A stretch of DNA of 62,927 nt, counting the filler, from Octopus bimaculoides (taxonomy: Eukaryota), in the NCBI RefSeq assembly GCF_001194135.2. It is 4 parts of 4 records of this genome, joined end to end, with 100 filler letters (N's around TTAATTAATTAA, not from the genome) between each part and the next. Parts side by side here need not be neighbours in the genome. Positions count along the whole stretch, not along the records: positions 20,183 to 35,511 come from NC_069001.1; 3 more parts are not named here. One strand, 5' to 3'. The position numbers were made by a program, and so were the translations under genes. The notes under the pieces are model-generated. The model made no database searches. It worked only from the letters and a program-made list of their open reading frames with translations, and was not told the DNA's origin. Shown here in pieces: positions 19,961 through 35,611 of this stretch (position 1 is its first letter; the number at the start of each line of letters is the position of its first letter).

Positions 19961-20253
19961 TTTAAAAAGAAAAAAGCAAATAAAACGAAGAAAAAAAAAG
20001 AAAATGAAAAAAGCAAATTTAAAATGAAAAAAGCAAATAAAACGAAGCTATGGCTTAATCAGCCAAAGGAGTAAATATAAACNNNNNNNNNNNNNNNNNN
20101 NNNNNNNNNNNNNNNNNNNNNNNNNNTTAATTAATTAANNNNNNNNNNNNNNNNNNNNNNNNNNNNNNNNNNNNNNNNNNNNTATATATATATATATATA
20201 TATAGATATATATATGTATATATATATATATATATATATAGATATATATATGT

Positions 20254-20284
<31 letters not shown>

Positions 20285-20756
20285 CATATATATATATATA
20301 TGTATATATATACATATATATATGTATATATACACATATATATATATATACACATATATATATATATATACACACACACATATATATATATAGATAGATA
20401 GATATAGATATTGCCGCTATAGCTATATGTGAATGTATGGAGAAAGGGAAAAGAGTGTTTGCAATGTTTTGTGCGTGGGCGAATGTGTATACGGAGTTAA
20501 TGACGGCCAGATAGCTCGATTCTATCTATGAATATCCTGTGCACTCAACAGTATTAAAACATAAGTAAAGACAGTTTTTCTAAGTAGAGATTTTACCATA
20601 TGTACCAACTACGTTACTAACAACTATATTGCCGTGCTCCCATTTAAGTCAATATGTAGAAATATATATATACGCGTGTGCCTACATGTATGTACATACA
20701 AACATTTATATGCATACGCGTACTCACACACACACACACACACATACACACACACA

Positions 20757-20826
<70 letters not shown>

Positions 20827-21614
20827 CGCACACACCTCCAAACACACGCGCACATATACACATGCATATATATTTCTATATATATATGGGAGTAGTGAAA
20901 CATACGCGTTCGTCTCCGCACAACGGATTGCGTCCGATTGGTTAATCATATATTTTCCAATAATTCGCAATGGCTTTTAATGGTTACTTTTTCATACGAT
21001 ATTGATGGCTAAATAACTACGTTCAGACACTATTACAATGAGAAACTAAAACACAGACGTGTTCGCACACCGATACTCACACAAACGTGAATGGAGTTTC
21101 ACACAAATATACATACATATATAAATATTTGTTTTGGTTAGCTTTTACCATTGGAGACTTAATAAATGTTTCTTTCTCAGGACCTTGTAATATATAAATT
21201 CAAGACTAAATATTTCACATCTATTTATGCCCCTACTTAACAAATTGTATACAACATCATATCAATTAATCTCCCCAAGCGTGCCTCGTGTCTCTCACAC
21301 GGAAAGATCTTATATTCATATTTGCAAGAGACAGTGTGACGCACACGCCGACGTTTGGTGAAAGAGAGAGAATATTATAAATCTGAACGTTCACGGAGAT
21401 AGTGATAATAATAAAATTGATGAGGTTAATTAATAATATATGTCCTGCAGATTTGAACCTGAAAATCCAATCGGGTTTCTGTTTCGCCTTTCGAAAACAC
21501 CTGCTCGTATCAGCCAATATGTTTTTCAACACATTCGTTAACGTTGGGAGATTTATAGTTTCTGGTGTTTCGATCTTGCTGTGTCACTGTTACTTCTGGA
21601 TCACATTTTACATG

Positions 21615-21815
21615 ATAATTACCTCCACCAAGAAAGAAGGTTATGTTTTCATTGGCGTTGGTTTGTCCGTCGGTCTGTCAGTGTGCAAAATAACTCAAAA
21701 AGTTGTGAACGATATTTAATGAAACTTGCAGAAAAAGTTGGTAATGGCACATGAAATACATGACGAAATTCTGGTGGTGATCCGGGAATTTCTATGGATT
21801 CTTGAAGGATTTTTC
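21615..21815 (+). mobile_element. Helentron/HINE-like non-autonomous element; second 5' fragment at 22278-22325
   Basis: attacctccaccaag...aaggttatgttttcattggcgttggtttgtccgtcggtctgtc...aactcaaaaagttgtgaacgatatttaatgaaactt; head repeated as ttttacccccgccaaggaggttattttttt at 22278. Confidence 0.65.
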
Positions 21816-22849
21816 ATTTGTTATATTTACTTTACATGAAGTATTACAATGTTACGTTCTTTGATTATCTCCCTTGAAAACACATCGTTTCCACGTAACC
21901 TTTGATGGTGTTGCCGTTTAGAGACAGTGTTGATGATGACGATGGTCGGAATAAGTATGGGAGGAGCATAAAATAGTATCGGTGGTTATAATGGCGGCAG
22001 GAGCGATGTGATGTGTGATGCTGAGGTGATGGTGGTAATAGTGGTGTTGATGTTAGTGTTAGTTGTGTGATGGTGGCATTGCAGTGCTTATACTGGTTGT
22101 GGTGGTGAAAGTGAGTGTCAAGTTAACCGTCATGGTAACATTGATGGCGGTGTATGTGATTGAAGTGGAAGCAATGGCGATGCTGCTGATGAGGCTAGTG
22201 ATTGTGAACTGCTTCAGATGATACCTGTTTTTAAAGGGTTCTCTTTTTCTTAAAATCATATGGCTGTGTTATTTGTTTTTACCCCCGCCAAGGAGGTTAT
22301 TTTTTTGCCGGCGTTGGTTTGGGAAATTGGGCGATTTTCAGCATGCGTGTATATGGGTGGAAATGAGCTGCTTGATGGAGGTAATAATAGCTAAATGGGT
22401 CATAAATCATGCATAGTTTTTGACATCATCATATGAATACCCAAGTGTAGAGAAATTTTCTCTGAAGTCGAATATAAAAAGATCTATGAGGGTTTATATG
22501 GCGTGCGTAAAGCTGAATTCCGCTAATATTTCATTTGTTTAGAGTTGACAATACATGAAGTTACACACAAAAGGACATCTTCCAAATCCTGTTTACTGAC
22601 TGGGTAAAAATAATCAAACTTTAAACTTCTATAACATTTTAAAAAAAATCAATAATAAATCTCTGAGTGAGGTATAAACAGTAGCTGCACGACATCGTGA
22701 AGTATATTTGCCACCTAAATGTAGCTGACCCTTAAGGGATGATGATACTGTTGCTTGTAGCCCCAGCTGTGCCCTATCAGTATTTGCAAAGGGAAAAGTA
22801 TATGTATACTTGCATTGAGAATCATTTCCCATCTCCAACCTGTTGTTGT

Positions 22850-22894
22850 CACACGCTGATGACGGGTCAATACCCAGAAACTCGAGTCCGTGTG
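22850..22894 (+). ncRNA. Type I hammerhead ribozyme, copy 1 (predicted cleavage after GUC 22888)
   Basis: cacacg CTGATGA cgggt-caat-accca GAAAC tcga GTC cgtgtg; stem I 6 bp perfect, extended by 22828-22842/22903-22917; palindromic ACTCGAGT stem III. Confidence 0.85.
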
Positions 22895-23207
22895 TATCAT
22901 GTCAGGTTGGAGATGAGATTTATGACTTTCCTTTGCAAATACTGATAGGGCACAGATAGTGTGTCAATAGCCAGCTGGAGGAGATGTCTTCCTGGGGCTA
23001 CAAGCTAGAGTAGCATCAACCCTTAAGGGTTAACCACATTTAGGTGGAAAATATACTTCACGATGTGGTGCAGCTACTGTTTATACCTCGCTTAGAGATG
23101 TATTATTGCTTGTTTTCACTTTTTCGAAATCATTGACTTTTCATCACTGGTAAAAGTATATATATATTTGCACTGAGAATCATTCCCCAGCGCCAACCGG
23201 TGGTTGT

Positions 23208-23252
23208 CACACACTGATGATGGGTCAATACCCAGAAACTCGGGTCCGTGTG
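23208..23252 (+). ncRNA. Type I hammerhead ribozyme, copy 2 (predicted cleavage after GUC 23246)
   Basis: cacaca CTGATGA tgggt-caat-accca GAAAC tcgg GTC cgtgtg; perfect 5-bp stem II; A-C mismatch at the base of stem I. Confidence 0.8.
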
Positions 23253-24550
23253 TATCACGTCAGGCTGGAGATGGGAACGATGACTTCCATTTGCAAATAC
23301 TGATAGGGCACAGTTATTGTGTCAATAGCCAGCTGGAGGAGATGCCATCTTGGGGCTACAAGCTACAGTAGCATCAACCCATAAGGGTTGACCCGCATTC
23401 AGGTGGCAAATATACTTCACGATTTAAAAAAAAAAAAATTCTGAAAAAAGTGAAGTAGCCCTTGAGATTCCGCGTAAGATTATATCAATAGACCAAATGT
23501 TAAAATTTCCACTGGTGCAGCCAAATAGAAAGGTCCCTTGGTTGCTGGTCAAAATCTCTGTCTTACAAATGGTTTTGTAGCTGGATGCGCTGAAAGTATG
23601 TAGGTGTCCATGTATAAATGTGTGTGTACGTGTGTGTGTGTGTGTGCCTCTGTGTGTATCTGTGTGTGTGTGCATGAAGCGTTTTTGAGTATGTATATAA
23701 GACCCCTATTTTGTTAAACGAACTCATGAATATGATCCACCCGATGTCCCTGGATACTACGGATTGTACTGTAATGATGCGAAGAATACGGACTATGATC
23801 CTAAGAAATATGTGATATGTGGAAACGCGCGTAGTGATTCCTTAAAATATGACTTCCATCTATAGATTATTAATATTACTTTATAGGTACGTATATATGT
23901 CTGTATGTGTGAATGTATGTGTAAGCATGTATGCATACATATATGTACGTATGTATGTACAATTCGCTAATTATCTCGCAAACAAAATATAGAAATTGGA
24001 AGTTTTACAATATAGACGGCAATATTACTACGACTGCAGGTATTGTTGCCGCTGCTGCTGCAGCTGATGATGTTGACGACGACGATGATGATGATGATGT
24101 TGGTGGTGGTGAAGTTGTTGGTTTATTTTAGAGACCACACTGCTAATATAAGCTAATATACGCTCTGATATATTTGAACAATGCAACAACACGTGTTGCT
24201 TTCCCTGTTCTCAGATTCAAAAACAATATATACCAACGGTATTGTCTTTCATGAAGAAAGAGATTTCAGCGACAAACAAGTCCAGATGGTAAACAAGCTT
24301 GTGAACAAGAGAATAGAGAGATACCATGTGTGCTTATCGCTTGGTTTGTATTAAAACATCTAGAGAAAGAGAAAGGCAGGAAGGTAAAGATGTAATTGTT
24401 ACGAGCGGGAACGAGTGATTGCAGAGATGTGTGTGTTTGTGTGTGTGCGCCTGTGTGTTTGTGTGTGATATATAAAAGTGCCTGTGTGTGTGACACAAAT
24501 ATCAACATATATGTATGTGCGTTTGTGTCTATCTATAGGCAGACACACAG

Positions 24551-24593
<43 letters not shown>

Positions 24594-25153
24594 NNNNNNN
24601 NNNNNNNNNNNNNNNNNNNNNNNNNNNNNNNNNNNNNNNNNNNNNNNNNNNNNNNNNNNNNNNNNNNNNNNNNNNNNNNNNNNNNNNNNNNNNNNNNNNN
24701 NNNNNNNNNNNNNNNNNNNNNNNNNNNNNNNNNNNNNNNNNNNNNNNNNNNNNNNNNNNNNNNNNNNNNNNNNNNNNNNNNNNNNNNNNNNNNNNNNNNN
24801 NNNNNNNNNNNNNNNNNNNNNNNNNNNNNNNNNNNNNNNNNNNNNNNNNNNNNNNNNNNNNNNNNNNNNNNNNNNNNNNNNNNNNNNNNNNNNNNNNNNN
24901 NNNNNNNNNNNNNNNNNNNNNNNNNNNNNNNNNNNNNNNNNNNNNNNNNNNNNNNNNNNNNNNNNNNNNNNNNNNNNNNNNNNNNNNNNNNNNNNNNNNN
25001 NNNNNNNNNNNNNNNNNNNNNNNNNNNNNNNNNNNNNNNNNNNNNNNNNNNNNNNNNNNNNNNNNNNNNNNNNNNNNNNNNNNNNNNNNNNNNNNNNNNN
25101 NNNNNNNNNNNNNNNNNNNNNNNNNNNNNNNNNNNNNNNNNNNNNNNNNNNNN

Positions 25154-25198
<45 letters not shown>

Positions 25199-25619
25199 AT
25201 GTAAGCTGATAGATATTTATTTATTCTCATATGTATATACCCCTCTATCATTATTTGCTTTTACGCTTGCTAAAGACAATTTAACATTAAACTGATACGT
25301 TCGTCAATAAATTTGTAGATTACAAATTTAATATTCATAACAAAAATTTTGTTGATAGTCACTTCGAAATATTGGGCAGCAAAGCCTTCGTCGGACTGCG
25401 ATGCATTGCAGTTAGTCTTCCTTTTATATAGTCTCTGCTGCACTGAAATCTTCTTTTCGTGTGTGGCTTTACGTGGGGTGGTGGTTAGGTTTTTATGATT
25501 GACTATTATGGAGGAGCACTTGGAGGAATTATGATTGATTAAATTTGGGGTTGTGTTATTGTTTAGAATGTAATCATGGATGTAGGAGTTTGTAAACAAG
25601 CCTTGCTCTTTGACACTTT

Positions 25620-26040
25620 CGTTTGCTTCAGTCACTCTACTGCGGCCATGCTCTGGCATGCCTTAAAACGTTTTTAGTCGAAGAATTAGACCCCAAGACT
25701 TGTTATTTGAAAGCCTAATAAGTATTCTATCGGTCTCTTTTTCTGAACCGCTAAGTACACCAACATCGGTTGTCAATCGATGGTGGTGGTGATGGGGGAG
25801 ACAAACACAGACACAAAGACACACAAACATAAATGCACACACACACACACACACACAAACACACATGTATATATATATTTACGACGGGCTTCTTCCAGTT
25901 TCTGTCTAGCAAATCCGCTCACAAGTCTTCAATCGGCCCGACGCTTTTGTAGAAGTACACTTGCAAAATGTGCCGCACAGTGGGACTGAATCCGGAACCA
26001 TGTGGTTGGGAAGCAAGCTTCTTACCACACAGCCATGCTT
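25620..26040 (-). mobile_element. SINE family A, full length, diverged
   Basis: Reverse complement of 41275-41670 including tggctgtgtggtaagaagcttgcttcccaaccacatggttccgg. Confidence 0.85.
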
Positions 26041-26193
26041 TCCCCTGCATGTGTTTCGTTCTTTGTTAGGTCAGAAGATTGTCTTCTGCCACAATCTTGG
26101 ACGGATCAATGTCTCGTTAACAAATTTAATGGATGAAAGCTGTATGAAAGCCCGACAAAAATATAAACACACAAACACACACACACACACACA

Positions 26194-26241
<48 letters not shown>

Positions 26242-26249
26242 ATTTTGCG

Positions 26250-26430
26250 TTTGCTTTTGATCCACCACCATTGTTGGTTTATTTACGTCCCCCGAAATTA
26301 ACCAGCTAATTAAATAGGCCGTTGGGATAAGCAGCAATAAGTAGTTAGAGCTTCGTTGAATATTTTAGTAGAATACCCTTCAAGGCAATATCACAGCATG
26401 GTTGTAGTCCAATGACTGAAGCAAGTATGA
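26250..26430 (+). mobile_element. SINE family A 3' half, highly diverged
   Basis: gtttatttacgtcccc...cagcatggttgtagtccaatgactgaagcaagta. Confidence 0.55.
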
Positions 26431-27761
26431 AATAAAATGCATACCACTTCATAGAAATCAAAACCAATCAATGGTTATGTGTTGTCTAAGGAGAGTGATT
26501 CTAACAATATTATTAACACACGTACTGGTCGATTCAACTTCTTTATTATTATTACTTTCGTTAAATACCCGATTAACTAATCGATTACGAACTTAATTTG
26601 ACAATCAAAAACTAATGAGTTACTATTTAACCAAATTAAAGGAATACTAGATTAGTTAGTTGGATATTTAACCAATTCGCTAATAATAAAAGGGAGGATT
26701 TGAGCCAGTGCGTGTGTTAATAACATTGACATAATGACTATCCCAAAATACAACAGAATTTGTTTCAAGACGCGAATTCACATAAGGAACCTTGCAATCC
26801 GGATACAGAAACGGAATCAACCAATAAACACTCTTTCCCAAAATCTCTCTCATACAATAAATAAGTGTCTTTGCACTTGTTCCTCTGTGTGAGCATCGAG
26901 CTTAGAACATGATTATTTTCGTACAAAAATATAGTAACGTGATACAAGGAAATCATTTAAAAAAATGATAGTTTAAAAAAAAAAAAGAAAATAATGATGT
27001 ATTGATACGTTGTTTTTCATTTCTGAATAAGGAAAATATATGATATTTTCGGAATAGATATTTGATATCATTATATTTTTTTAATAGGATTTTTTTATAA
27101 AATTCTACATTTAATTTTGTATAAATAGCTTTACAACCGGCCAGAAAAAAACCAAAACAAAACAATATTATTGTTTACATTCCAATAGTTGTTTATTCGA
27201 TATTGGAACCACACACACATACCATCCCCACACACATATTTACAGAGAGAGAGATGGTATATATATATATATATATATATACATACATACAGAGAGATTG
27301 AGATAGCTCACACACACACACACACATAGATATATATCATATTCATATATACATTTTCCTGTATGTATTTATGTAAGTATATAGAGAGCCATTATTTACT
27401 TTTTGATGCATTTATTTATCGAATCTTATCTACATTTTTTTAGTAATTAATTCTTCTGTTGTGTTATGATTGATATTCATCTTTCGGTGAATGTTTTCGA
27501 GTGGTTGATAATAACGTTATATTATATATTGAAGCACTCAGATGAGAGGAACTTCAGAAGAAAGTAGTCATTAATTAATTATTAATTAAAATATTGAGAT
27601 TGTTGAGACAACTATTATTTAACCTATTGGAATTTTACATTTATAACGTGCAAACGTATCACATTAGCAGCAATTAAACTTGTAAATACACATGCAAACA
27701 CACACATATATATGTATGTATGTAGATATGTATGTGTGTATGTAATGTATGTACGTATGTA

Positions 27762-27815
<54 letters not shown>

Positions 27816-29244
27816 TATATANNNNNNNNNNTCAGATGAGAGGAACTTCAGAAGAAAGTAGTCATTAATTAATTATTAATTAAAATATTGAGATTGTTGA
27901 GACAACTATTATTTAACCTATTGGAATTTTACATTTATAACGTGCAAACGTATCACATTAGCAGCAATTAAACTTGTAAATACACATGCAAACACACACA
28001 TATATATGTATGTATGTATGCATGTAGGTTTATAAGCAAAATCTTCATTAACTAGAAGCTTCCAAACAACTGTTACCATAACAAGAATTAGAATCCCAAT
28101 GAATGACAGTCAGGCATTATTTTTATATGGTCTGTTAAAGACAGAATTTATCCTGAAGGAACTATGAAGCTGAGGACAGCATGGAATGGTTTAATCCTAC
28201 AAGTCCCTAAATATCAATGAAAGACAAATTAAGACAAATCGAACACAAGGTGCAAAAGCCTCGCAGGTACAACATACTTGAATGTTTTACAGGTATCTTC
28301 ATTCGCCTAACAAACATCATTATGATATCGACACCTTTTCATTATCATTCAATCCAGCGTTGTCAACAGTGTAAAACAGAAATGCTGTCTGAGAAGTGAT
28401 AAATAAGGAGAAGCCAAACAATTGCGCAGTATATCCAGTATGTTTACTTGTGTGTATTGTTACACATACAGACATGAAATCTCAAACGTAGCTACGCAAC
28501 ACAACAGTTAAAAATGAGATATAGAAAGCGGAGAAATATCATTACATCGTTCATTACCACACCATGAAGTATAGAAATTTAAAATCATAAAATATTGAAG
28601 CGAAATGGAAGGCAAAATATATTGGACAGAATTAATGTAAAGTGTAGCCGAAAATACAGCTTGCAAATACATATAATGGAAAATAATAACTTAAGTATAA
28701 TCAATCTAGAATTGTAAACGTTTACATTAGCCAGAGTACATAAACACATAGGTACTGCGACCGAACAACCTATATTGGATATTTAAAACTAAAAGACATG
28801 AGGCAAACGCACTAAATATAAACTAATGGAATAATATATCAGTTTTAAAATCAGGCTTAAATTATATCAAAACAGCACGATATGGGAATAAACCAATGTA
28901 GACCAATATCTCGTAAACATAAACCTTAATTCAATATGATATCAATAAACGACTATATTCATTTAAAACATATGAATCATATAAAATTTACTACAACACA
29001 AACCGAAACGAAAATACACGCCGACATACTTAAAATATTAAAAAGGAACTGAATTAAATGTAAACGAAGCGAATAACATGTCACTTTAACTATCAATAAC
29101 CTACCAAATAGTATTACATCAACGTAGACCTATTTAATGTAAACTTTAATTATAGAGAATATATTTAAACTGATATTTACAACTAATAAATTGCATGGGA
29201 TATAATATTGCCTACACAGCTAAATCAATGAAGCATAACAGAAC

Positions 29245-29279
<35 letters not shown>

Positions 29280-29775
29280 TTGCTATTACGGAAAAGTGTC
29301 GCATGTCCAAATTTGGCTAAATGCATTTTCTTTTCAAGGATAAACTTGAAGGATAAACTTCTACTTCGGAATTCCAATTCTCACTGCTCCGAAAACAAAA
29401 CGGGGGTTTTCATATGAGATACAGGAGTATGCCTGTCTTTATATGATAATATTCGAAAAGCTGGAGTATTGAGAAACTGATGTTCTGGATAACAGAATTT
29501 TTCTAACCAACATGTCGGCGTTTTAGGCACGAAAGAAGGACAATACTAAAGAGGTAGTGGAAATTTTGACGTCGACTGATTAAAAGCAGTAAGGATACGG
29601 GTGGAATTCGATGAACCAGGTATCAGTTCAAGAAATGAGAGGCAATTTTGGTTGAGTCTGAAACAACACAGGTGACGGTTTTGTACCCTTGTGAGGCATT
29701 TCTATATTCATATGTTGTAGATATATTATATGAATCAACAAATACATGTATATGTGTGTATATATGTATATATGT

Positions 29776-30148
29776 GGAGGCGCAATGGCACAGTGGTTAG
29801 GGCAGAGGACTCGCCGTTTCGATTCCCAGACCGGGCGTTGTGAGTGTTTATTGAGCGAAAACACCTAAAGCTCCACGAGGCTCCGGCAGGGGATGGTGAC
29901 GATCTCTGCTGTACTCTTCCACCACAACTTTCTCTCACTCTTACTTCCTGTTTCTGTTGTGCCTGTAATTCAAAGGGTCAGCCTTGTCACACTGTGTCAC
30001 GCTGAATATCCCCGAGAACTACGTTAAGGGTACACGTGTCTGTGGAGTCCTCAGCCACTTGCACGTTAATTTCATGAGCAGGCTGTTCCGTTGATCGGAT
30101 CAACTGGAACCCTCGACGTCGTAAGCGACGGAGTGTCAACAACAACAA
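29776..30148 (+). mobile_element. SINE family C
   Basis: ggaggcgcaatggcacagtggttagggcag head, gtttcgattcc B box, caacaacaac tail; small deletion relative to 6893-7279. Confidence 0.92.
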
Positions 30149-30254
30149 TATGTATATATATTTTTGTGTAGGCATACTCACGTACACATATGATTTCATG
30201 TTTAGGCATACATAAGAACTGCAATTTCGGGGTAGGGATAAGATGATTAGATCC

Positions 30255-30395
30255 ACCCTAGTGCTCAGCTGACACTTATTTTACCGCCTTCAAAACGCAA
30301 CAGCGTCCTCAACGGAATTAGAACGCAAAACGAATAGACGGACGAAATGCGTTAGGCTTTTTACGCAGCTTGCTAACGATTCTTCCAGCTCTTTC
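30255..30395 (-). mobile_element. SINE family B, diverged 5' part
   Basis: Reverse complement gagctggaagaatcgttagcaagctgcg...atttcgtccgtc. Confidence 0.6.
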
Positions 30396-30880
30396 CCTTA
30401 GACACATATACACATTGTAATCTTGTTCATACTTAATTCCTTTTTGTGAATCGAAATTCGGATATGAATCACTCAGCCTTTAAAGCCATTTATAACTCGT
30501 TTATTACATTGTATGAAAGGGTTCTTAAGGCAGTAATATAGAAACAACTACTATTATTATTATTATTATTAAAAATAATGATATAATATAAGAAAGCAAG
30601 CAAGGACACTAATAAGTGTTTTTTTTTACTACTCGAATACCTTATTGACTACTGAAGTCGTCCTCTTCCACACCTTCCCCAGCTTCCCAGATTGTCTTAT
30701 AATGTGGTTTTTCTTGATATTTCGACCGGTTCCTCTAAGGAAATGATTTCTTTCAATGCTGATTCTTATTGGAAATATACGGTACTATATCACCTACCAA
30801 GCAAATCTTCATTGTAACCATCGCCATGACACACACGCACACACACATGTATGTGTGTATTATCTATATAACTATCTACC

Positions 30881-30942
<62 letters not shown>

Positions 30943-31654
30943 NNNNNNNNNNNNNNNNNNNNNNNNNNNNNNNNNNNNNNNNNNNNNNNNNNNNNNNNNN
31001 NNNNNNNNNNNNNNNNNNNNNNNNNNNNNNNNNNNNNNNNNNNNNNNNNNNNNNNNNNNNNNNNNNNNNNNNNNNNNNNNNNNNNNNNNNNNNNNNNATA
31101 TATATATTTGCTAGTCTCAAGATAAGGTAAGAATCATTGATCGACTATTGTTCTTGGCATTGGAATTGTTATCGGTATTGCATTCATAGCTCTTTGATCT
31201 CAGCATCAATAAGCGTGTGCCTGTTTGTCTGCGCACATATACGCGCGCACACAAACACTCACAGGCATAAGTGTGTGTGCGTGCGTGCTTACGTGTTTGT
31301 GTGTATGCATGATAGTATATATTTATAATAACGACACACGCACACACACACACACATATGTGTGTGTGTGTGTGTGTGTGCACCACAAATCACTTGATGT
31401 TCGCCAACAATTTTGCACGCATGTACGAACACACTCTATTATGAACAGTATTACCACTATCATCTTCAGATGAAAATTGTGCCGTATGTTCATTCACGAA
31501 GACTCACAGAATATGTTCAAACTCATATATATTTGAGATACATATATTGCACTAACACAAGACTGCACTCACACGTATACACAGAAAATCACACACACAC
31601 GTACAGGTAAACATACATACAAACACACAAAAATATATGTATAAATAGACGCAA

Positions 31655-31895
31655 GCGTGGTTTGCTTCCATACCGCATGATTCCGAGTGGAACCTTGGGC
31701 AAGTGTCTTCTACTATAGCCTCGTGTCAACCATTGGTGTGTGTATGTCCCCGTAACTTAGCGGTTCTGCAAAAACGGCCGATAGAATTGATAAATACTAG
31801 GGTTACAAAGAATATGCTCTGGAGTCGATTTGTCCGACTAAAGGCCGTGCTTCAGTATGGCTGCACTCAAAATAACTGAAACAAATAATAAAGAA
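31655..31895 (+). mobile_element. SINE family A with internal deletion
   Basis: ccttgggcaagtgtcttctactatagcctcg joined to cccgtaacttagcggttc...aactgaaacaa. Confidence 0.8.
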
Positions 31896-32206
31896 CACAC
31901 ACACACATATATATATATATGTATGTGTAGAATCAGAATAAACAGCAGGATATCACGTAGTAATGCAGTACGACCGTTGATGACCTGCTGCTTATTTTGA
32001 TTTTATTCACCTTACTTCGAACCGCGGAGCCGCGTGAAGCTAAGGAGTTCCGCTCATAAACACACACGTCGGCCGGTCTGAGATGCTAGCTCACGATCCC
32101 TAGGCAGCTTTCTTTTTATTTGTATCGTGAAAAAAAATGGAAACATTTGGAATCATTACTACAAAACATATCAATTTATAGGCTAATCGTTTTATTCATT
32201 TATATT

Positions 32207-32285
32207 ATGGACATCTGTGCATCTTTATTACACCACATGTGTGAGGAGATGTTCTGCTTCGAACACTTAGCTCAAGATAGTTTTG
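32207..32285 (+). CDS. Candidate first coding exon MDICASLLHHMCEEMFCFEHLAQDSF(G)
   Basis: ATG about 110 nt downstream of a CpG-rich patch (32020-32100); ends at TTG|GTGAGG donor (phase 1). No homology recognised. Confidence 0.25.
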
Positions 32286-33827
32286 GTGAGGCACCGTCCT
32301 GAAAAATAACGATATTTGTTGTGTGTTTGTAAGTTTGTTTTTTGTTTCTTTTGGTGGTGAGAAATTTAAAGGTTCGCCGGCCCATTGCTGTCTGCATCTG
32401 ATTTAAAAACGAAGAGATAACCTCCAGAGCAGCTGGAGTACAGAGAACGAGAGAGAAAGCGACTTGGAGAAAATAGAGATATGAGGAACTGGCAGGGAGG
32501 GAGATGGAGAGCAGAAACCCTGAGACAAACGGACGGAAAGAAAAGAAGTGAGAAAGAAAGAGAAAGACAGAGAGACAGAGAACGAGCGAGGGAGAAAGAT
32601 AGAGAGACAGACAGACAGACAGAAGAAAGCTGGAGACAAGTCAAGAAATTTTACCGCGGTATGATGTGAACTTAAACCGTGAGTGCCGGAACGAATGCTG
32701 ACCCTGGACGGATTTTGCCAATTCAATTGTTTTTTTTTTATTCCTCTATTTCATTTTCCTGAGAGATAAAAGACACAGTTCACTCATACACATATACACA
32801 CTAAGTTAAGTAAGAGAAACAATGGACAATCAAAGCGCTTTATATATAAACTCGTTATTATGAGTCGGAAATAGCATTGTGACTAAAACATGGCAACGTG
32901 TGGTAAAATACGATAAATGATAGGGGTCCATGAACTAAGACACGTACGATTTGTTATTTATAAAGTAAGGACCGACACATACACTGCGGTTCCATATAGC
33001 AACGGAATACTGCATATAGTGAAAAAACAATCGTTTGTGATTAATCCCCGGCTAATCGCTACACTTCATTAGATAATTTCATTATTAGAGGTATCCGAAT
33101 TTATCATTCGCAGTCGTTCCGGCTAGTGTGATGAATGCATATGATAACGAAATATAACGAAATAAGAGTGAAATCAGTATAACATTCAAAACCTACTGCT
33201 AACCCCATCACATTTGTAACGTTTGACTATTTGTCAGTTTTAGCAAATTCAAAAGCGATATTTCACATTCATTCTCTGTCGTAGCCGATGTATTTTACGC
33301 TAAGCTAACAATCATAGCGAATGACATCTGTTTGCTAAGCCGGATATTAAATATGCTTGATGAGAATCTTGCAAACTATGATTAATTTTTTCTCGTACAC
33401 AAATGACTGGCAAACTTCATTGCGTTTCGTTCACAATAGACCGATTGTTCAGACTACTAATTAATACATACATACAAACACACAAGAATGCACGCATACA
33501 CATAAGTATATTTAATATATATATATATATATATATANNNNNNNNNNNNNNNNNNNNNNNNNNNNNNNNNNNNNNNNNNNNNNNNNNNNNNNNNNNNNNN
33601 NNNNNNNNNNNNNNNNNNNNNNNNNNNNNNNNNNNNNNNNNNNNNNNNNNNNNNNNNNNNNNNNNNNNNNNNNNNNNNNNNNNNNNNNNNNNNNNNNNNN
33701 NNNNNNNNNNNNNNNNNNNNNNNNNNNNNNNNNNNNNNNNNNNNNNNNNNNNNNNNNNNNNNNNNNNNNNNNNNNNNNNNNNNNNNNNNNNNNNNNNNNN
33801 NNNNNNNNNNNNNNNNNNNNNNNNNNN

Positions 33828-33870
<43 letters not shown>

Positions 33871-33887
33871 CACACACAGAGAATGAT

Positions 33888-33921
<34 letters not shown>

Positions 33922-35611
33922 ACCGAGTGAGTGAGAGAAGGAAAGAAAGGAACGAAGGAAGAAAGCAAGGAAGGAAGAAAGAAATAAAGAAAGAATCTGT
34001 TCGACAGAAGGATGGTGGTAAAGATATCAAAGATAGATATTTGCCTATGTTTCTTGTAAAATCATGCCAGTTCACTCGATAACATTTCTCCACTCACGTC
34101 CGTGCATATGAATTCTGTTGAATGTGTATATATCTACCGAAACTTACACATTCACATACATTCAAACATGTGTAAATGCCTATGTACTTATCTCTCTCAC
34201 TCCCCTTCTCTTCCCCCACCTCTCTCTCTCCCCTTCTCTTCCCCCACCTCTCTCTGTATGAGTGGGCGATCATGTGTAAAACCCAAAGAACAGAATATAA
34301 CGCTTGATAAAGGAGTTTATACGTTTGTAATTATCATTTAACTTATGGTGTTTGACTACATTCTTACTCTGAAGGAATTTGGGCTGCCATTGATCAGGCT
34401 CTGCAATTGCGAATACTAATGAATTACAACACAAATGCTGAAAATAAAGAAGGCTAATTTTCACTGATTAAAATTACTGGAGATGTAAAGTGTGATAACT
34501 TGTCTAGCATGTTCTCTTATCCAGTGCAGTTACTCCGAGTAGCTCGTATGATCAGCTGTTTAGGACTGATATTCTTAAGAATGCTTTATGAATCTGTGTC
34601 TTTGGTTATATGACTATATGTATACGTTATATTATTCAACACTTGGCACCTACGAACACAACAAATACATTTGTTTCACATGTGAAAACTGATGATAAAT
34701 TTTGGCAAATAATTGTGTTATACTCTAATCATTAGCAAGGTTGACATTCTTAAACCAGTTAAGGACCTTGTTATTTTAAGTTACACGTCTAGTAGAGGCT
34801 TGTGTGTGGTCCTATGAACATAGAAAGCGTTATCTCCTCATACTGGGAGATCTGAAACTTAGCGTTCTAAACCTTTAGAATGAATTGTATGAAACTGTTT
34901 CTTTCAAAATTTAAATGATATGCTACTTTTAAGGTTAGTGATAACGACCTTAAGCAAAGAAAAAGTTCTCAACGTATTAGTAGAGGCAATCTTCTTGTGT
35001 AACAGTAATTGTTCAAATAACAATCGTTCAGTTTTGCTGCGGTAAAATGTTTTGCGATACAAAACTACCGTAACTTTTCGGTTACTCCACTTGATATTGT
35101 CCAATATCCGTTTTGTAGAATAGTTCATTCTGTGTTCTTACATTACAAATGGGTCTATTTCCTGTATTTCTCATTGCTTTTACAGTAAGAGATCTGCTTC
35201 TATTTCGCTTTCATTCAGTTTCATCTACAATTCTTCATAAAATGTAGTTCTTCGCATATCTGTCACTCTCACAGATCTGTTTCTTCCGCGGCACAGAAAC
35301 GCACAAACAAACACACACACACACCCACACACACACACACACACACATGCGCGCAAATGTGTAGACGCGCACATAAATATATACAGGGATGCATTTCATA
35401 TGTTTACATATAGATATATACACGAACATAAATCTTCAGTATATTCTGATATGTAAAAGTGTGTGTATATATATATGTATATATGAATACATAAATATAT
35501 ATGTATATATANNNNNNNNNNNNNNNNNNNNNNNNNNNNNNNNNNNNNNNNNNNNTTAATTAATTAANNNNNNNNNNNNNNNNNNNNNNNNNNNNNNNNN
35601 NNNNNNNNNNN

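Follow-up and report, generated by a model that had tools for sequence, protein, structure and literature searches.

A probable non-LTR retrozyme insertion with two hammerhead motifs in the genome of Octopus bimaculoides

A short non-coding element with two hammerhead ribozyme motifs lies in a 62,927-nucleotide (nt) stretch of the Octopus bimaculoides genome (GCF_001194135.2), referred to here as the window, along which all coordinates are counted. The part analysed is the piece from NC_069001.1, at positions 20183-35511, which amounts to 14.3 kb without its 1015 N. The interval 22649-23423 is probably one old retrotransposition insertion of a metazoan retrozyme lacking long terminal repeats (non-LTR retrozyme), built on a 358-nt unit. 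The class itself is known. It was described in 2020 and includes a mollusc, and the octopus locus is a new example of it. In addition, this one locus appears to show the whole Penelope-type insertion signature on a 358-nt non-coding unit, and most likely the Penelope machinery was the mover of the element, by analogy with known Penelope insertions.

An earlier reading of the same DNA, made from the sequence alone, had proposed a non-autonomous, ribozyme-bearing retroelement. This proposal holds, and it is supported by a canonical hammerhead, by matches to a covariance model of validated retrozyme hammerheads, by a repeat unit without an open reading frame (ORF), and by a target-site duplication of 11 base pairs (bp). 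Mobilisation by Penelope-like elements, also put forward in the sequence-only reading, is plausible too, yet on grounds which that reading had overlooked, namely an inverted copy next to a partial tandem.

Anatomy of the insertion

The layout comprises a target-site duplication, an inverted and 5'-truncated copy, a partial tandem, an extra segment found at one end only, and a second target-site duplication (Table 1). Within the tandem, 22791-23064 aligns to 23149-23423 over 274-275 nt with an identity of 88.4-88.7% and a single 1-nt indel, the two starts being 358 nt apart. The repeat had been recognised from the sequence, and its ends had been placed exactly, whereas the two starts had been set 3 nt short of the true ones at 22791 and 23149. 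Altogether the tandem is 1.77 units long and carries two hammerheads, and there is no third direct copy in the piece. Given the 358-nt spacing and the continuous sequence between the ribozymes, the template must already have had a 358-nt period. Judging from this arrangement, it was a multimeric or circular RNA and not a 3-kb element.

Table 1. Positions of the element's parts in the window
Feature	Position	Strand	Remarks
Left target-site duplication, TTTAAAAAAAA	22638..22648	.	same 11-mer at 23423-23433
Inverted, 5'-truncated partial copy	22649..22795	-	equals unit positions 22927-23108/23116 minus 36 nt (22956-22991)
Direct unit 1	22791..23148	+	one full 358-nt period; direct repeat, spacing 358; GC 41.6%
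Hammerhead 1 with extended helix I	22826..22918	+	catalytic domain 22850-22894; predicted cut after C22888; found by descriptor and by covariance model R1
Predicted 358-nt RNA monomer	22889..23246	+	would be released if both hammerheads cut
Tail-like segment	23065..23116	+	shared by unit 1 (3' side) and the inverted copy (outer end); missing at the 3' end of unit 2; from the three-way alignment
Direct unit 2	23149..23423	+	stops at the unit position equivalent to 23064; 88.7% identity to unit 1
Hammerhead 2 catalytic domain	23208..23252	+	predicted cut after C23246; 24.2 bits with R1; distal helix I 23185-23200/23261-23277
Right target-site duplication, TTTAAAAAAAA plus 5 extra A	23423..23438	.	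11-mer at 23423-23433

The inverted copy forms inverted-repeat arms with unit 1 at 22642-22766/22992-23116 (125 nt, 89%) and at 22767-22795/22927-22955 (29 nt, 97%). Its outer boundary merges into an A-run and is ambiguous within 22642-22650. The inner boundary is a 5-nt junction microhomology, GGGAA (22791-22795), which is common to the inverted copy and unit 1. At the outer end, the inverted copy reaches 44-52 nt past the unit position at which unit 2 stops. The segment 23065-23116 accounts for this extension. Its final stretch is T-rich, a complement to the A-run target, and the segment as a whole resembles the 'tail' of Penelope insertions.

In a three-way alignment, the inverted copy is 90.3% identical to unit 1 and 88.2% identical to unit 2. 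All three copies are therefore near-equally diverged (88.2-90.3% identity), with 3, 6 and 6 private changes in 102 shared columns, which fits one insertion event followed by a decay of approximately 5-6% per copy. The insertion is old, as indicated by the divergence of approximately 11% between copies, and this copy is probably inactive.

As had been claimed from the sequence, the element has no ORF of note: none exceeds 69 amino acids, and there is no Pfam domain in the stop-free segments of 21042-26133, that is, in the element and its flanks. Because of the inverted copy, a transcript across 22642-23116 would form a hairpin (-280 kcal/mol, z -26) whose stem measures approximately 150 bp and whose tip is hammerhead 1. 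Such a hairpin transcript is a potential origin of double-stranded RNA and small RNAs.

Hammerhead motifs and their predicted dimer

By its sequence, the hammerhead motif is real and of the retrozyme type. We searched the piece with a descriptor that called for CUGANGA, GAAA and H17, for one hairpin each in helix II and helix III (the latter closed by A-U), and for 5 or more contiguous pairs in helix I. This descriptor matched copy 1 alone (helix I of 6 bp, helix II of 4 bp, helix III of 2 bp with a 4-nt loop), against a chance expectation of 0.003 matches per 14.3 kb on both strands, as estimated from 300 dinucleotide-preserving shuffles. Copy 2 is missed by the strict descriptor only because its pair 2.1-1.1 is A.C. 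Since the Rfam seed for this ribozyme is narrow, we made an independent covariance model, R1, from four retrozyme hammerheads that cleave in vitro, namely coral Amil224, mussel Mg353, and axolotl Ax353 and Ax330. Their sequences were taken from Supplementary Table 2 of PMC7229834 and given the textbook structure, and the whole piece was searched with filters off. R1 found two full-length matches, 22850-22894 (24.3 bits, E 2.6e-5) and 23208-23252 (24.2 bits, E 2.8e-5), the E-values being rough due to a short calibration. The next best match reached 9.2 bits.

The claim of a complete type I core in each unit is borne out, as both copies have CUGAUGA, helix II, GAAA, helix III and GUC, as well as A15.1-U16.1 and C17. 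Likewise, the predicted cuts fall at the positions named before, after 22888 and 23246, and delimit the same 358-nt monomer. Copy 1 reads CACACG / CUGAUGA / C-GGGU-CAAU-ACCC-A / GAAA / C-UCGA-G / UC^ / CGUGUG, with CUGAUGA at 22856-22862, helix II at 22863-22876, GAAA at 22877-22880 and GUC at 22886-22888. Helix I is open and has 6 bp (CACACG 22850-22855 with CGUGUG 22889-22894), helix II is closed and has 4 bp plus the 10.1-11.1 position, and helix III has 2 bp (A15.1-U16.1 and C-G) with a UCGA loop. Past helix I follow internal loop 1 (22843-22849/22895-22902) and a distal helix of 16-17 bp (22826-22842/22903-22918). The 101-nt domain of copy 1 folds with -41.5 kcal/mol (z -6.0).

Despite the fully intact core nucleotides, each copy has one mismatched helix-closing pair. 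In copy 1 this is C10.1.A11.1 at the base of helix II (22863/22876), where copy 2 has U-A. In copy 2 it is A2.1.C1.1 beside the cut site (23213/23247), which arose when the G of a CpG turned into A at position 23213. The absence of changes in the 14 core positions was considered as a sign of selection and rejected, because it has p ~0.18 at 11.6% divergence. Four T-to-G differences of copy 2 from copy 1, at 23190, 23192, 23199 and 23202, crowd into 13 nt of loop 1 and the distal helix I's 5' strand, an unusual cluster of transversions.

Canonical metazoan type I hammerheads have a helix I of approximately 6 bp, a helix II of approximately 4 bp, and a helix III of 1-2 bp with a palindromic loop of 2-4 nt (PMC4209133). 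This geometry explains why they need, or gain from, a second copy. Copy 1 shares it, with helices of 6, 4 and 2 bp and a UCGA loop on the third, the mismatches C10.1.A11.1 and, in copy 2, A2.1.C1.1 being caveats. From A15.1 through U16.1, helix III and its loop spell ACUCGAGU, an 8-nt palindrome, and copy 2 retains a palindrome of the ACUCGAGU type by way of G.U pairs. Palindromes stand at the same place in validated retrozymes, for example ACGCGCGU in mussel, ACACGUGU and ACAUGU in axolotl, and ACAGUACUGU in coral.

With a helix III of just 2 bp and a palindromic loop, cutting would most likely take place as a dimer of neighbouring units. As a single motif, the hammerhead fold of copy 1 (-8.2 kcal/mol) is less stable than an inactive alternative (-14.0 kcal/mol). 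For two copy-1 domains, the minimum-energy structure of the cofold is an exact double hammerhead (-32.9 versus 2 x -14.0 kcal/mol), the form also known for newt, axolotl and mussel. On these thermodynamic grounds, the dimer is most likely the preferred active fold. Cleavage in monomeric form, too, is reported for invertebrate retrozyme hammerheads that have 2 bp and a tetraloop.

Contrary evidence and competing explanations

A number of observations weigh against a retrozyme insertion, beginning with the hammerheads themselves. The Rfam model Hammerhead_1 (RF00163), suggested as a check in the sequence-only reading, did not recognise the motif: there was no match at the gathering threshold in 15 kb, nor at E<=10 in 1.1 kb, where only chance snoRNA, CRISPR and folP matches appeared. 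On a 76-nt slice the model gave 13.3 bits versus a gathering score of 34, with an alignment that covers the core and helix III and passes over helix II. In copy 2, distal helix I has four uncompensated mismatches (23190, 23192, 23199, 23265), and as a result the fold of its 102-nt domain is no different from shuffles (z -0.17), unlike that of copy 1. The differences between the copies that fall in helices are only disruptive (the A.C at 2.1-1.1 and the four distal mismatches). None is compensatory, so the locus offers no covariation evidence. Furthermore, if 22863/23221 changed in the direction of CpG decay, the C.A mismatch would have been the ancestral state of pair 10.1-11.1. The circular monomer folds with -94.9 kcal/mol, an unexceptional value (z -1.4) obtained on a sequence that is a chimera of two decayed copies; with this z, a 'highly self-paired circle' was dropped as evidence.

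Taken at face value, the silence of the curated Rfam model and the lack of covariation would suit a chance hammerhead-like motif in an ordinary local duplication or satellite that was never a ribozyme. We regard this as very improbable. The descriptor expects 0.003 matches by chance, R1 sets the two sites apart from all else by 15 bits, and the helix III palindrome and the 6/4/2-bp geometry are those of validated ribozymes. Moreover, the target-site duplication and the inverted copy indicate retrotransposition and not local duplication.

The edges of the insertion raise another question. An A-run at the right end had been reported from the sequence, and it does exist (23426-23438), but it is mainly target-site duplication and no clear poly(A) tail, because TTTAAAAAAAA is also present at the left edge. 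Only four runs of at least 8 A occur in the 14.3-kb piece, two of them at the two insertion edges, and a shared 11-mer was seen in only 22 of 1721 pairs of control windows. The duplication has 11 bp, although its low complexity makes the exact length uncertain. Counting against the retrozyme, the right run exceeds the left by 5 A (13 versus 8), and both units have AATATA 11-16 nt ahead of their 3' ends, so that a poly(A)-dependent route is conceivable. A short remnant of poly(A), slippage or a fault in the assembly could account for the 5 extra A.

Such a route is the core of an alternative in which the element is a hammerhead retroposon resembling a short interspersed nuclear element (SINE). 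Its polyadenylated transcript would have been inserted by a long interspersed nuclear element (LINE) through L1-type target-primed reverse transcription, with the inverted segment arising via twin priming. Besides the A-runs and AATATA, the target TTTT/AAAAAAAA, which we take to be similar to an L1 endonuclease site, speaks for it, and so does the outer end of the inverted copy, located in a T-rich tract (23109-23130) able to anneal to an A-run overhang, as twin priming needs. Yet the 5 extra A lie within the homopolymer error of a draft assembly, and a tRNA search and Rfam at E<=10 on 1.1 kb detected no tRNA, 5S or 7SL head. The matches to the A and B boxes of RNA polymerase III (pol III) promoters have two mismatches each and are in the wrong order. 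Insertions of more than one unit with a tandem structure are the norm for retrozymes and Penelope elements, not for SINEs, and type I hammerhead repeats are tied phylogenetically to Penelope pseudo-LTRs in the literature. All in all, a LINE-driven origin is unlikely, though it should be taken seriously.

As a separate observation on these promoter boxes, the B-box-like match is formed by helix II and loop 2 (GGGTCAATACC; 22864-22874 and 23222-23232) and differs from the B box (GGTTCGANNCC) at two positions, a likeness judged to be coincidence. The sole A-box-like match lies downstream of it, not upstream.

Further points against a retrozyme moved by Penelope machinery concern the mover and the family. 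The tail-like segment measures 44-52 nt versus 30-40 bp for Penelope elements, and its end overlaps the A-run. Penelope reverse transcriptase and GIY-YIG domains are absent from the Pfam scan of 21042-26133. The Penelope remnants that the sequence-only reading had placed 6-11 kb upstream lie outside the NC_069001.1 piece, in unrelated DNA, and provide no evidence. Moreover, no family copies were retrieved, which leaves a single known locus. Exact-pattern scans with the hammerhead domain and the best conserved 24-mer gave no matches in metagenome contigs, viral contigs and prokaryotic genomes, none of which hold the host genome, and a 584-amino-acid concatenate of the element's open frames had no match among 5.8 billion proteins.

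With one locus only in the piece, the element might belong to no independent family and be a solitary relic, pseudo-LTR or internally deleted copy, of an autonomous Penelope-like element, having lost its ORF. Type I hammerheads do occur in Penelope pseudo-LTRs, and Penelope insertions are 5'-truncated, partially tandem and often accompanied by an inverted copy. However, the continuous 358-nt period contrasts with the approximately 3 kb of an autonomous element, and no reverse transcriptase or GIY-YIG remnant was found by Pfam in the flanks. In addition, pseudo-LTR hammerheads are 'minimal' (no helix III, a helix II of 7-8 bp, a helix I of 4-5 bp), while those of the octopus are canonical, with 6 and 4 bp and a helix III. 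A remnant of this kind is quite improbable, and we retain the insertion of a non-LTR retrozyme as the probable explanation.

Proposed life cycle, surroundings and relation to known systems

For a retrozyme of this type, the life cycle would start with the transcription of a tandem locus. The type I hammerheads would cut after GUC, most likely in the dimeric double-hammerhead form made by two neighbouring units, and the 358-nt product would carry a 5'-OH and a 2',3'-cyclic phosphate. Its ends could be kept together by helix I and circularised by a host tRNA ligase of the RtcB type. A reverse transcriptase acting in trans would then copy more than one unit length off the circle or a multimer, with a Penelope-like element as its likeliest supplier. 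Penelope elements are reported to be abundant in coleoids. If both cut DNA strands prime synthesis, target-site duplications would end up enclosing an inverted 5'-truncated copy followed by 1.77 units in partial tandem.

It is possible, but doubtful, that the host harbours an undescribed and still active retrozyme family with a 358-nt unit that gives abundant circular RNAs. If it does, such loci would be direct genomic evidence that retrozymes are inserted by Penelope-like two-strand priming. An abundant and expressed family would also be a small circular RNA source relevant to the annotation of the host genome.

The piece as a whole has 35.7% GC, is rich in microsatellites, and contains no convincing gene that we could see. 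A 208-nt direct repeat with 96% identity and a spacing of 294 nt (27538-27745 and 27832-28039) flanks a 10-N gap (27822-27831). Rather than being biological, this repeat most likely stems from scaffolding or haplotype overlap, and R1 finds no hammerhead at 27538-28039. The assembly gaps 24594-25153, 30943-31097 and 33538-33827 are each edged by TA/CA/GA microsatellites. Most of the largest apparent repeats and inverted repeats of the piece are N-run artefacts, and others are microsatellite matches.

Cervera & de la Pena (2020, NAR, PMC7229834) characterised metazoan retrozymes in coral, mussel and axolotl, and predicted their presence across many phyla of invertebrates. Published examples consist of 150-450-bp repeats with type I hammerheads and a GC content below 50%, lack LTRs, PBS (primer-binding sites) and PPT (polypurine tracts), and have target-site duplications of more than 4 bp. 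The octopus element agrees with this description in its 358-nt period with a type I hammerhead per unit, its non-coding nature, its GC content of 41.6% and its 11-bp duplication; PBS and PPT were not specifically searched. No description of a cephalopod retrozyme of such kind was found in the searchable literature.

The closest parallel among these is Mg353 of the mussel Mytilus galloprovincialis. Both are short, AT-rich, ORF-less tandem units, of 353 nt in the mussel and 358 nt in the octopus, and bear one canonical type I hammerhead each, in which a 6-bp helix I is followed by an internal loop, helix II has 4 bp, and GAAAC, a palindrome and GUC follow one another (ACGCGCGU in the mussel, ACUCGAGU here). 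Both also have target-site duplications of more than 4 bp. Sequence similarity is limited to the catalytic core, however, and helix II is closed by U-A or C.A in the octopus and not by G-C. The octopus locus, in contrast to Mg353, has 1.77 units, is approximately 11% decayed and adjoins an inverted copy, and its circular RNA is a prediction.

The satellite-2 hammerheads of newt and axolotl (HHR_Amex1/2, which are double hammerheads) share the weak helix III of 1-2 bp, the palindromic loop, a tolerated mismatch at the base of helix II (U.U in Amex2) and the dimer as the predicted stable active fold. For the octopus element, unlike for these, the dimer requirement is thermodynamically predicted only. 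Schistosoma has the SINE-like Sm-alpha, a non-coding repeat, dispersed or tandem and a few hundred nt long, which likewise contains a type I hammerhead. Sm-alpha carries pol III promoter boxes, whereas those of the octopus element are unconvincing.

The insertion itself looks most like that of Penelope-like elements (Penelope/Poseidon, Neptune), which combine a partial tandem with a 5'-truncated, inverted copy on the 5' side, an extra segment at one end, a hammerhead near the repeat and a target-site duplication. The octopus element differs from them in having no ORF for reverse transcriptase/GIY-YIG, a unit of 358 nt instead of approximately 3 kb, and canonical instead of minimal hammerheads. 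It is this architecture, the inverted copy together with the partial tandem, that links the locus to Penelope. The same arrangement, with an optional tail of 30-40 bp, was described for Penelope insertions by Craig et al. 2021. It can be understood from the work of Frangieh et al. 2024, in which a Penelope-like protein, once purified, cut both DNA strands and extended them, with reverse transcription beginning at two sites inside the RNA. A 2026 preprint argues for the origin of vertebrate retrozymes from Penelope elements, and the octopus locus supports the proposal, not yet beyond a preprint, that the retrozymes of animals derive from Penelope elements as non-autonomous forms.

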